From the sequence record NC_061448.1: a DNA stretch of 64,000 nt; one strand, 5' to 3'. Positions 35,039 through 39,596 of this stretch are shown here, piece by piece (the stretch's first letter is position 1; each line of letters opens with the position of its first letter). The notes below the pieces were generated by a model, which did no database searches, was not told the origin of the DNA, and saw nothing but the letters and a program-made list of their open reading frames with translations. Both the position numbers and the translations under genes were made by a program.

Positions 35039-35241
35039 ATAGAAAAATGATCGCTTGGCTTTCGCTGGTGGTCTTCTGCGTGGTGGGAGTCGTTACTTCC
35101 ACCGTAGCATTGAATGACTATAACCTGCTATTGAGCTTGATACTAACAGTCGTGTTTGGTGCCGGGCTTATCATCTGTATGCGTTGTCTTGAAAGAGCAA
35201 CGTGGGACTACTGCGTTAAGAAGGGGAAGAAGAATGGCTAA
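35035..35241 (+). CDS. small two-TM membrane protein
   Basis: Two hydrophobic helices and a basic C-terminus. Confidence 0.65.
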   Translation: MNRKMIAWLSLVVFCVVGVVTSTVALNDYNLLLSLILTVVFGAGLIICMRCLERATWDYCVKKGKKNG

Positions 35242-35767
35242 GTCACTTGGCGTTTATCTGACGTATGTTCTGCGTCACAAGCCGCAAGACATTGGCATCG
35301 CTATGGACACTCAGGGCTGGGTATCTGTGCATGACCTGCTTGAGAAAGCACGATACAACAAACCGGTCACGATGCAAATGCTGATCGAAGAAGTAGCGAA
35401 CGACGACAAGGGGCGCTTCGAGTTCAACGCAAGCAAGACCCGCATTCGCTGTGTTCAAGGACATTCGTGTGAGCACGTCATTCTCAATCTCGAACCGTGG
35501 ACAGACTGGAGTCCGTTGTATCACGGTACCGCTGAGAAGAACATCGCATCGATCATGCAAGACGGCATCCTGAAACGCAAACGCAAGCACGTCCATATCA
35601 GCAACGATATTGAAACTGCGAAGCGTGTGGGTCAACGTCATGGTGTGCCTGTTGTGTTTCAGATTGATACGCTGTCCATGATTACTCATGGTTATAAATT
35701 TTACCGCGCAGAGAATGGCGTCATTCTTACCGAGTATGTACCGTCGCGCTATATTCGACTGGTGTGA
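35234..35767 (+). CDS. kptA: RNA 2'-phosphotransferase (Tpt1/KptA)
   Basis: LTYVLRH, GWV, KGRFE, IRCVQGHS, LYHGT, RKHVHIS, RHG, NGVILT motifs. Confidence 0.95.
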   Translation: MAKSLGVYLTYVLRHKPQDIGIAMDTQGWVSVHDLLEKARYNKPVTMQMLIEEVANDDKGRFEFNASKTRIRCVQGHSCEHVILNLEPWTDWSPLYHGTAEKNIASIMQDGILKRKRKHVHISNDIETAKRVGQRHGVPVVFQIDTLSMITHGYKFYRAENGVILTEYVPSRYIRLV

Positions 35768-36225: not shown

Positions 36226-36248
36226 TGAGGATATGTACATGAAAAAGA
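36226..36248 (+). repeat. 23-bp RBS/start repeat TGAGGATATGTACATGAAAAAGA, copy 1 (copy 2 at 36573-36595)
   Basis: Perfect direct repeat. Confidence 0.85.
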
Positions 36249-36559
36249 CAAAAGTTGAACCTACCATTGAAGGCCGTATCTTTACTTTGTTTGGTGTTGG
36301 TCCTGTTCCGGACGAATCAACAATACCATTCGCAGACCGTGATACATTTCTTCCGATGCTGCGTAAAGTTCAGGAAAGTGCTCAACTGGAACGCATTCGT
36401 GGTTTGTCCTGTTGTCCGTATTGCCGAGAGACAATGATGCTCGGTGAATACACCAAAGACAACTGGCTGTGGTCCTATTCATATCAGCATATGATTGAAC
36501 ACCACAACGTAACGCCGTCCGCAGAATTTATTGCTTACGTCGAAACCGCTTCCAAGTAA
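36239..36559 (+). CDS. hypothetical protein with CxxC and His motif
   Basis: RGLSCCPYCR...HMIEHH. Confidence 0.75.
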   Translation: MKKTKVEPTIEGRIFTLFGVGPVPDESTIPFADRDTFLPMLRKVQESAQLERIRGLSCCPYCRETMMLGEYTKDNWLWSYSYQHMIEHHNVTPSAEFIAYVETASK

Positions 36560-36585
36560 CCTGAACTTCGCCTGAGGATATGTAC

Positions 36586-37989
36586 ATGAAAAAGATTAAA
36601 CACACTTTCCGACTGACCGACCTTGTTCGTATTGCCGATGTTCTGCCTGTCACTATGAAACACTTTAGTGGTGCTGGCGAAGAAGCAATTGTTGTTGAAC
36701 GTAATGATACCTCTGATGAATATGGGTTGCACATCAAACATCATGGTTACGTTTCGTGGTACCCTGCTGAAAGCCTGACGCTTATCAAACACAACCAGAG
36801 CGAATTGCTTGACAAGTGGGAAGCTGGTAAGTACGGCAAGAAGAAAAAGAAAGAGCGCAAGATCCCCGATGAACTGCGCAACTTCACCGCTATCTTGCCT
36901 GTGACTTGCAACGCTGATTGCTCTTTCTGTCCTGAGAAAGAGATGGAGAACAAGGCGCCGCAGAAAGAGTGGCAAGACAAACTGATTGCTGCGATTAAGA
37001 CACACGGCCATCGTGTCGATCACGTATCAATCTCCGGCGGTGAACCTACGCTGCGTATGAAGTACCTGTTCGAAACGATCGACCAGATTAAGACAAAAGC
37101 GCATATGCGCAAAGTGGGTCTGACTTCGAACGGTCAGTTCCTTGAGAAGCCGAATCAGTTGCTGACGTTTCTCGATCTGAACACGGACGAGATGTTGGAA
37201 AGCAAACTGTCGCATCTGAATATCAGTATGCACTCGTTTGACCGCGAGAAAGCAAACAAGATCATGGGCGTCAACTATACGTGGACTCTCGAAGACCTTG
37301 CTCGCTTCCGTCGTCAGTTAGGCCGCAAACTGAGTTTCCACATCAACTTCGTTATCAACGAACAGAACATTGATAACATCGAGTGGGAGTTCCGTCAGGC
37401 CAACGAGTTCATGAAAGAGAACCAGTGGATTGACGTTGTATTCCGTGTTGACTACGACAACAAGAAACTGAACAAAGAACTGCGTAAGTATGGTCTGGCT
37501 GTACAGGCTGCGCGTGAAGCAAAACGTCCACGCGATAAGAGCATCAAGTACACGCCTCCGAAAGTTAAAGAGCCTAAGCTGATCAAGCTGTTTAACTCTA
37601 TCTTCGACGGTAGCTTCTACGACGAACTGACCGAAGAGACTATGCCTGGCTTTGGTGATACGTTCACAACCGCGTGTCCGTCGTGCTTCACTCACCGCAG
37701 CACTGACTTAGGTAACAGCTTCGCATATCTGAAAGCGTCTTCATACGAACCGAACGAAGACGAAGAAGAATACACTGAGATGGTATTCCACATGGACGGT
37801 GGTCTGTACTTCGATTGGTCGCGCAAAGAGCCTGTGCCAGAAGTGAAAGCGAAGAAAGCTAAACCTCTGCCTCGTTTGAAGAAAGCGAAGAAGGCTGAAC
37901 CGAAAGGTTATCCTGATAGCTGCAACTATTCTTCTCCGTGCAGTTACTCGCGTGGCTCGTCTTGCAGTTTTGGCAGCGGTATGTGCTAA
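36586..37989 (+). CDS. radical SAM protein with extra N-terminal domain and Cys-rich tail
   Basis: CNADCSFC (CxxxCxxC), ISGGEPTL, TSNG, LNISMH. Confidence 0.9.
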   Translation: MKKIKHTFRLTDLVRIADVLPVTMKHFSGAGEEAIVVERNDTSDEYGLHIKHHGYVSWYPAESLTLIKHNQSELLDKWEAGKYGKKKKKERKIPDELRNFTAILPVTCNADCSFCPEKEMENKAPQKEWQDKLIAAIKTHGHRVDHVSISGGEPTLRMKYLFETIDQIKTKAHMRKVGLTSNGQFLEKPNQLLTFLDLNTDEMLESKLSHLNISMHSFDREKANKIMGVNYTWTLEDLARFRRQLGRKLSFHINFVINEQNIDNIEWEFRQANEFMKENQWIDVVFRVDYDNKKLNKELRKYGLAVQAAREAKRPRDKSIKYTPPKVKEPKLIKLFNSIFDGSFYDELTEETMPGFGDTFTTACPSCFTHRSTDLGNSFAYLKASSYEPNEDEEEYTEMVFHMDGGLYFDWSRKEPVPEVKAKKAKPLPRLKKAKKAEPKGYPDSCNYSSPCSYSRGSSCSFGSGMC

Positions 37990-38364: not shown

Positions 38365-38831
38365 TGCCTCGCATGTTCACTGATACACACCGCAAGAAAT
38401 ACTATCGTCGCAAAGATGACCCGCAGTATCACGGTGACCTGTGCGAGTCATTGCACATCGAAGGTATGGAAACGCTGAAAGATCTGAAATACTTTCAGAC
38501 TGCTATCGGCGCAATGCGTAGACGCGACAATATGAAAGTCGATACGTCGCGTAAATTCCAAGAGTGGGAACGTCTTGGTATGCTGATACGAGGTAATCCC
38601 GATATTCGGGAGTTGCAGAAACATGTTCACGCTTGTGCGTCCAGACTGAAAGCACTTCGCATTGCTTATACCGAAGCGCACTCTAAACGACACAATCAAC
38701 CGCTGCGTTTTGAAGTGAAAGACGCAGACAACAATCGTGTTGATTTGTTCGTGACCTACGATGCAGCGAAATACTGCAAACTGTATTCTGGACTAGGTGC
38801 AACTATCGAACGTTACGAAGGAGATAAGTGA
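38364..38831 (+). CDS. hypothetical protein
   Basis: TAATG coupling. Confidence 0.7.
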   Translation: MPRMFTDTHRKKYYRRKDDPQYHGDLCESLHIEGMETLKDLKYFQTAIGAMRRRDNMKVDTSRKFQEWERLGMLIRGNPDIRELQKHVHACASRLKALRIAYTEAHSKRHNQPLRFEVKDADNNRVDLFVTYDAAKYCKLYSGLGATIERYEGDK

Positions 38832-39319
38832 TGGCCAAGCATCATACGTTTCGTCTGAATGATATGTGCGCCGTTCAAGGCAAGCGCAATGTATTCGGTC
38901 CGCAACAAGGCGAGCATGTTATTGTTGTGGGACGTCACCCTGATCTGAATGAGTACACCGTGTATTACAAAGACGGTCTGTACGGTTGGTTCAAAGCAGA
39001 AGACCTGACGCTTGTACAACACGATGCCCATGCACAACTTGAAGTGTGGGAAGACGCGTACAATGAACGTTGCAAACAAGATGATGACACTGTGAATGAT
39101 TCGCCTAAGTGTAAATCATGCGATGAACCTCTTGGCGAAGATCGTATTGAGCAGGGCCTGTGTATAAACTGCGACTTCGATGAAGATGCACTAGATGAAC
39201 TGAGCAAGAAGCTCGACCGAATCGAAGCTGGGCATTGTTCTGAGTGTGACAAGAAATTGGATAGCGACGAAGGTGATGACGAGTCAATGTGTCTGTCTTG
39301 TCGCTGCAACGAAATTTGA
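38831..39319 (+). CDS. protein with radical-SAM-like N-terminal domain and two CxxC-CxxC fingers
   Basis: HTFRLND...EY...W...E.LTL..H; CKSC/CINC and CSEC/CLSC. Confidence 0.75.
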   Translation: MAKHHTFRLNDMCAVQGKRNVFGPQQGEHVIVVGRHPDLNEYTVYYKDGLYGWFKAEDLTLVQHDAHAQLEVWEDAYNERCKQDDDTVNDSPKCKSCDEPLGEDRIEQGLCINCDFDEDALDELSKKLDRIEAGHCSECDKKLDSDEGDDESMCLSCRCNEI

Positions 39320-39332
39320 GGATAGAAATAAA

Positions 39333-39596
39333 ATGGCTGTTGGTTTTGTAAAAGACGATGGCGTAAACGATACCATCGAAACAAACGTGATGAACGAGAT
39401 TGACCGCGCTCGTTCAGAACTTCTAGGCGTGGGTTCAGATTACTGCGTCAACCCTGATTGCGGTGCAAAGATTCCTGTGATGCGCAAACTCGCTATGCCG
39501 AATGCGCGTTACTGCATTACCTGTCAGGCAGCGCATGACGGCACTGCTAATGTCGGCTATAATCGCCGTGGCTCAAAAGATTCTCAGTTGAGGTAG
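39333..39596 (+). CDS. ybiI: DksA/TraR C4 zinc-finger protein, YbiI-like
   Basis: C-x4-CG..IP..R..A.P.AR.C..CQ and terminal YNRRGSKDSQLR as recalled for enterobacterial YbiI. Confidence 0.9.
   Translation: MAVGFVKDDGVNDTIETNVMNEIDRARSELLGVGSDYCVNPDCGAKIPVMRKLAMPNARYCITCQAAHDGTANVGYNRRGSKDSQLR

Follow-up and report, generated by a model that had tools for sequence, protein, structure and literature searches.

The gene and its surroundings

The gene pEaSNUABM1_00277 lies at 36586..37989 on the plus strand of the window, by which we mean the whole stretch of 64,000 nucleotides that was analysed. It belongs to Erwinia phage pEa_SNUABM_1, a jumbo phage and Alexandravirus of 266.9 kb to which the window is 100% identical, and is annotated as a 'hypothetical protein'. 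It consists of 467 codons and a stop; the 467-residue translation is stop-free and the gene is intact. Two in-frame ATGs occur two codons apart, one at 36580, which opens the longest ORF and is an alternative start, and one at 36586, which is the GenBank start.

All of the features of the gene are on the plus strand. The product begins with a beta domain (residues 1-80, 36586..36825), modelled by AF2 with SH3-like strands at 13-68. Judging by homologue lengths this domain is missing in most homologues. The radical SAM partial TIM barrel follows (residues 99-313, 36880..37524), as delimited by Pfam PF04055, invariant columns and pLDDT >90. It holds the CX3CX2C cluster motif (CNADCSFC, residues 108-115, 36907-36930) and the GGE SAM motif (residues 151-153), both of which are invariant columns. 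Conservation, AF2 and profile alignment define a family-specific C-terminal beta domain (residues 331-415, 37576..37830), in which the invariant CPSC (residues 364-367, 37675-37686) is placed by AF2 at a hairpin turn. Charge computation finds an acidic run at residues 386-398 (37741-37779), and the domain finishes with a D-W-x-R anchor.

Beyond this core is a Lys/Pro-rich tether (residues 416-444, 37831..37917) that is predicted to be disordered (pLDDT <56). It carries a net charge of +7, opposite a charge of -7 at the acidic end of the core. Finally, the Cys-repeat tail (residues 445-467, 37918..37986) has three C-x-[YF] units and a C-terminal Cys; the four Cys are residues 446, 452, 460 and 467, and their codons span 37921-37986. 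A reading made earlier from the sequence only had listed CNADCSFC, CPSC, the Lys/Pro linker and a tail of three repeat units plus a terminal Cys, and each of these was recovered where that reading had placed it.

The clustering of C-x-aromatic units in the tail exceeds chance: across six frames of the 64 kb just 6 of 41,197 stop-free 25-residue windows hold at least three C-x-[FYW], and all six are the tail. A DNA tandem repeat under the tail was looked for and none was found; as the motif is also held through synonymous changes, a recent DNA duplication or low-complexity artefact is ruled out.

Several of the neighbouring genes could be annotated further. The gene at 35234-35767 (+), 'hypothetical' in the annotation of pEa_SNUABM_1, encodes a Tpt1/KptA-family RNA 2'-phosphotransferase (Pfam E 3e-45); in 15 of 15 relatives, including the Yersinia phage, it lies upstream of the radical SAM gene at a distance of one or two genes. 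The small Cys/His-containing ORF immediately upstream of the target (36239-36559, +) has a weak DUF7919 match only, and is not an obligatory partner since it is found in some relatives and missing in others. Downstream, the target's N-terminal beta domain has a paralogue (nucleotides 38843-39082; 34% identity, E 3e-9) at the start of the 162-residue ORF at 38831-39319 (+). With four CxxC pairs, the C-terminal half of this ORF resembles a zinc ribbon, and the ORF belongs to no family in Pfam or PHROGs. In all of the relatives examined, a DksA/TraR C4 zinc-finger protein (39333-39596, +; Pfam E 1e-7) is conserved downstream.

Fold and family placement

In the AF2 model of the window protein (mean pLDDT 83.8) the N-terminal domain is SH3-like, the barrel is confident and CPSC sits on a hairpin of the small beta domain. 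The tether and tail are disordered, with the tail undocked at pLDDT <50. Structure prediction, which the sequence-only reading had suggested as a check, gave confident domains and no placement for the tail. A compact homologue with a short tether (P0199) was modelled at pLDDT 93.8, and its post-core segment is predicted to be partly ordered, with pLDDT falling from 90 to 70 across the first C-G unit.

The protein scores 55.4 bits against PF04055 (gathering cut-off 29.5) and is thus a member of the radical SAM superfamily. The nearest solved structures in a fold search are MoaA (TMq 0.63-0.65 over ~280 columns) and viperin (0.61), followed by SuiB, SkfB and EpeE, with RlmN among the distant matches; the best profile match is MoaA too (2e-17). 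On these model comparisons the enzyme is best placed in the MoaA/viperin structural branch of radical SAM enzymes. What is conserved across the broad family is CX3CX2C, GGE, N-x-S-x-H, CPxC, a few acidic residues and a single Arg, and this single conserved Arg argues against an NTP-type pocket. Only two Cys are conserved after the barrel, those of CPxC, and they align with the first two Cys of the MoaA auxiliary-cluster motif in a local alignment that is not significant alone.

None of the curated NCBIfam cut-offs for any named family is reached by the window protein. MoaA was rejected (47.7-54.7 bits against cut-offs of 231-325, with the third cluster Cys and the basic GTP pocket lacking), as was viperin/pVip (48.4 bits against 180, the PADLOC pVip profile being matched at positions 9-160 of 257 only). 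HxsC was also rejected, at 55.7 bits against 267.9 and with no HxsA, HxsB or HxsD families among the neighbouring genes. Some C-G-[YF] units may resemble the glycyl-radical signature; the glycyl-radical enzyme activases fail (NrdG2 36.5 against 131, PflA 25.7 against 232), and the tail is disordered with no glycyl-radical domain match. The NCBIfam peptide-maturase models match at E ~1e-4 and cover only the first ~90 residues. We found no Pfam match to a SPASM domain, no SPASM/twitch Cys set and no Pfam or NCBIfam match to an RRE (PqqD-like) domain in the window protein, and neither PHROGs nor PADLOC has a dedicated family for it.

These scores bear upon the simplest explanation, that this is an ordinary nucleotide enzyme of the MoaA/viperin type with a functionless low-complexity tail. 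Such is the implication of the phage Y3 annotation, where the homologue Y3_274 is named GTP 3',8-cyclase, and MoaA and viperin are indeed the best solved matches. Yet the NCBIfam scores of 48-55 bits are far under the cut-offs of 180-325, neither the third auxiliary-cluster Cys nor the basic pocket is present, and the tail is kept, under purifying selection, across a family whose core identity is 20-40%. The scores, the family-wide tail and the codon evidence described below largely refute this explanation already, and we regard it as very improbable. The GenBank labels 'GTP 3',8-cyclase' and 'hypothetical protein' for these genes are thereby corrected.

The tail in cultured jumbo phages

Orthologues from 15 jumbo phages of Erwinia, Dickeya and Yersinia were aligned. 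Hardly any change is seen in their barrel or CPSC domain, but the tail, which is present in 15 of 15, takes a phage-specific form. There are four Cys in nine of the tails, three in two others, which finish with C-Q-F, and two in the remaining four, which finish with C-G-Y, so that each orthologue has 2, 3 or 4 units with variable spacing. Only one tail Cys aligns across all 15. The tether differs in length as well, through insertions among other changes; in Alexandra, SNUABM_2 and SNUABM_28 (L010, L012, L015) an insertion of 45-60 residues brings two extra C-S-[FY] units. Together with the two terminal tail units, this makes four again in these three phages.

Aligning homologues had been proposed in order to learn whether the repeat number varies, as in a substrate, or the Cys spacing is fixed, as in a cluster. 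Both number and spacing vary, which is the substrate-like outcome, and the absence of the tail from close homologues, which would have spoken against a fused substrate, was not observed. The alternative given in the same reading, a fixed auxiliary Fe-S or Zn site formed by the tail, does not match this pattern: the varying spacing, copy number and tether length rule it out.

Among nine close relatives, both TGC and TGT occur at every one of the four tail Cys sites. The aromatic sites show Tyr/Phe swaps or synonymous changes only, and the intervening residues drift. Because of this combination we consider the tail motif to be under purifying selection, with its number and spacing free of it.

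The N-terminal domain and the tail are also combined in different ways. SNUABM_33, 2910A and AD1 (L006-L008) have almost exactly the tail type of the window protein with a divergent N-terminal domain (36586-36800), and phB78 and SNUABM_30 have the N-terminal domain of the window type with another type of tail. From these combinations the gene looks mosaic.

A wider phage family

A word-indexed search recovered 67 homologues with identity down to ~33%, the majority of them lacking the N-terminal domain, and 63 of the 67 could be anchored for the analysis of tails. At least two Cys follow the core in 62 of the 63. The motif in these closer homologues is [S/G/R]-C-[G/S/N/R]-[F/Y] at a spacing of 5-10, with Cys counts of mostly 2 or 4 and a tether of 14-106 residues, and C-x-aromatic is the exact C-terminus in 36 of 63. 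In the most divergent of them the tail is rich in Cys-Gly and devoid of aromatic residues.

A profile search of 1.84 billion representatives extended the family to 383 clusters at E <=1e-10. At least two Cys are found in the last 40 residues of 118 of the 138 further representatives listed from these clusters, mainly as [G/S]-C-G units, and among the matches listed the final Cys is at most 2 residues from the C-terminus in 88 of 98 outer representatives. Overall, 183 of the 203 proteins among the matches listed have at least two Cys in their last 40 residues, against ~25% expected from the proteins' own core Cys content. The C-x-[YF] tail is a clade-specific variant of a Cys-Gly tail common to a large family from uncultivated phages, a scale that the sequence-only reading had missed. 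The family numbers at least 150 protein clusters at 50% identity with the peptide carried or adjacent. Every contig that was inspected is phage-like.

Family-wide, Cys spacings of 4-14 and tethers of ~20-137 residues are found, and the real tail units start at least ~20 residues past the core end. Some tails contain tandem-duplicated units, and there are up to 10 Cys. The tether is net basic in 105 of 160 proteins and net acidic in 42 of 160. In the outer representatives listed, Gly, Ser and Cys predominate over the last 25 residues, with no enrichment of His, Asp or Glu.

This range of forms has to be weighed against a metal-binding role, in which the tail would bind a metal or Fe-S cluster by completing an auxiliary cluster with CPxC, by bridging subunits or by storing metal. 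CPxC offers two ligands only, at the MoaA auxiliary-cluster position in a local alignment that is not significant alone, and two or four tail Cys could provide the missing ones; Cys counts of mostly 2 or 4 would also suit a cluster-ligand role, or a dithiol. Variable copy number by itself may be compatible with metal handling or with a redox arm. Variability alone, furthermore, leaves room for a metal-binding tail, since in some metallochaperones the length of the metal-binding tail differs from species to species. Against this role stand the wide ranges of spacing and tether length, the disorder predicted by AF2, and a composition in which Gly, Ser and Cys predominate. We consider a metal-binding tail to be unlikely, more so than the arm discussed below, but a serious rival.

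Among isolated phages (50,697 genomes) the superfamily is essentially restricted to the Erwinia/Dickeya/Yersinia jumbo-phage clade, and scanning a viral collection with the family alignment gave close relatives only. Across 185,579 cellular genomes, a motif-limited scan gave only generic matches to the N-terminal part of radical SAM enzymes, with nothing reaching into the family-specific domain. One homologue (L018) comes from a record labelled Proteus mirabilis (GCA_964210295.1), in which its 40-kb contig also encodes a dCMP deaminase, a helicase and head-tail joining proteins; this 'bacterial' record is probably phage or prophage DNA. We found no description of such a protein or family in the literature searched.

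Split genes and locus context

In five tail-less members of the family the repeat module is encoded by a neighbouring small gene. The products differ considerably. The 101-residue product of L016 combines a coiled coil and a Lys-rich stretch with two terminal Cys, and that of L020 (75 residues) is basic at the N-terminus and has five C-G units. L021 encodes a 217-residue protein with N-terminal C-G units and a Lys-rich helical body. The 79 residues of the L042 product include a Lys/Arg-rich stretch and four Cys, and the L057 product (65 residues) has five Cys in addition to a helix and a Lys-rich stretch. A basic stretch is present in all five and a helical part in three. As the basic stretch accompanies the repeats when the genes are split, the two form one module.

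We also took a census of 20 viral loci with a full core, two other contigs being too short for judgement. The peptide is fused, with at least two tail Cys, at 14 of these; a further locus has a single terminal Cys, one has internal repeats and one is split. At four tail-less loci of this census no repeat module was present within 2.5 kb.

No conserved partner genes were found around the gene in the 15 phages or on the distant contigs examined, and no conserved protease or transporter (exporter) was seen near it in the 15 phages and their neighbour families. In T4-like metagenomic phages (L021, P0194) the enzyme gene is located within structural modules: the L021 pair adjoins tail sheath, tube and baseplate genes, and on the P0194 contig the gene lies between the prohead protease and portal genes on one side and the scaffold gene on the other. 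In the jumbo phages it is found among small genes of unknown function.

The split genes bear on what the tail may be for. A ligand set that serves a structural purpose would be unusual as a separate gene, or with its repeats at the N-terminus. The same holds, in part, for another explanation, in which the tail is a swinging catalytic or redox arm and the substrate is something else, perhaps a nucleic acid bound by the basic tether. The Cys pair of such an arm might bring reducing equivalents or a chemical group to the active site, or serve as a hydrogen-atom donor. Class I ribonucleotide reductase, with its C-terminal Cys pair, and RlmN/Cfr, with two catalytic Cys, are precedents that resemble an arm. 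Moreover, the Cys come mostly in twos or fours at the extreme C-terminus of a flexible tether of at least ~20 residues, the invariant CPxC could serve as a redox pair, and the fold neighbours are the nucleotide-using viperin and MoaA, with RlmN further off. An arm, however, would find up to 10 Cys and tandem-duplicated units superfluous, and a catalytic arm on a separate coiled-coil protein, once with N-terminal repeats, is awkward. It is hard to see what an arm would gain from the almost strict Gly after Cys or from the clade-specific aromatic, and the core has no conserved basic residues for a nucleotide. We therefore think an arm unlikely, while taking it seriously.

The tail as a candidate substrate

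The explanation that we favour, as plausible if short of probable, is that this is a peptide-modifying radical SAM enzyme whose candidate substrate is fused or adjacent to it. A fused or adjacent peptide substrate fits best because of the variable copy number, the tandem expansion, the selection at the level of the motif, the minimum tether length and the split genes. The comparison of homologues supports a tail that acts as a separate, substrate-like module. Also in its favour are the acidic core end opposite the basic tether, the lack of an NTP-type pocket, the partly ordered post-core segment of P0199 and the precedent of HxsC. Against it stand the tail that AF2 leaves undocked, the four census loci with no module within 2.5 kb and the 42 net-acidic tethers, besides the Cys counts of mostly 2 or 4. 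The sequence-only reading had suggested a possible phage-encoded self-modifying radical SAM RiPP. Its substrate-like module is borne out by the variable copy number, spacing and tether, the selection and the split genes; the SPASM/twitch and RRE domains of the sactipeptide, ranthipeptide and cyclophane maturases that it cited are missing, as is a conserved protease or exporter nearby.

The architecture, its conservation, the variable copy number, the split-gene variants and the fold are the observed parts of this explanation. From them we infer a substrate role for the tail, a mode of docking and a chemistry, as follows. An enzyme of the MoaA/viperin branch would act upon a peptide carried by the same chain, where the tether of at least ~20 residues, usually basic, would let the tail reach the active site of its own chain or of a partner subunit. 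The tail thiols may then dock on a metal site held by the invariant CPxC, which is positioned where MoaA keeps its substrate-binding cluster. Docking would bring the residue after Cys beside the 5'-deoxyadenosyl radical. This residue is Gly in most of the family; here it is Ser, Asn or Gly, followed by Tyr or Phe. Hydrogen abstraction could then lead to one covalent change per unit, most plausibly a thioether cross-link.

A bolder and somewhat more doubtful proposal is that this is the first radical SAM system with its substrate fused to the maturase, and that it is the sign of a large family, carried by phages, of self-contained modules for peptide modification. Every Cys-Gly(-aromatic) unit might be converted in cis, by hydrogen abstraction after the Cys, to a cross-linked or reactive unit that is used in infection.

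If the tail is a substrate, this would be a new architecture of enzyme and substrate and possibly a new chemistry on Cys-Gly units. To our knowledge, radical SAM peptide chemistry comes almost entirely from bacterial clusters with separate precursors and SPASM/twitch enzymes. A minimal MoaA-like enzyme that carries or adjoins a Cys-repeat peptide is a departure from this pattern. As the Erwinia/Dickeya/Yersinia jumbo phages are essentially the sole cultured carriers, the gene is a practical entry point for study.

Comparison with known systems

The nearest experimentally studied parallel is HxsC/HxsA. HxsC, a radical SAM enzyme without SPASM, modifies a short array of tripeptide repeats in a basic protein that binds DNA (PMC13128918). 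The window protein is likewise a non-SPASM radical SAM enzyme with a repeat-array peptide, and HxsC is its best NCBIfam match. The HxsC substrate, however, is a separate protein with HxS repeats, whereas the Cys units of the window protein are fused to the enzyme; and HxsC needs HxsB and HxsD and serves bacterial defence, whereas ours is a phage gene.

The sactipeptide and ranthipeptide synthases (SkfB, CteB) and the NCBIfam Cys-repeat maturases are also radical SAM enzymes that have peptide cores with repeated Cys. In the thioether-forming maturases an auxiliary cluster has an open site to which the Cys of the substrate binds. Unlike the SPASM/twitch maturases, the window enzyme has only CPxC, lacks an RRE and has its Cys-repeat peptide fused. 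Those maturases act on a separate leader-core precursor, whereas in the window family the candidate precursor is fused and is separate in only five relatives.

MoaA and viperin have the closest solved folds, and CPxC is at the place of the first two auxiliary-cluster Cys of MoaA; the window protein differs from both in lacking the third cluster Cys, the basic nucleotide pocket and a passing family score. The borosins (OphMA-like) have a comparable polypeptide, with enzyme and core in one chain, the core C-terminal behind a linker, and split versions as well. The borosin enzyme, in contrast, is an N-methyltransferase from fungi and bacteria, for which self-modification has been proven, and here we have a radical SAM enzyme from phages whose fused tail is a candidate core and whose self-modification is putative.
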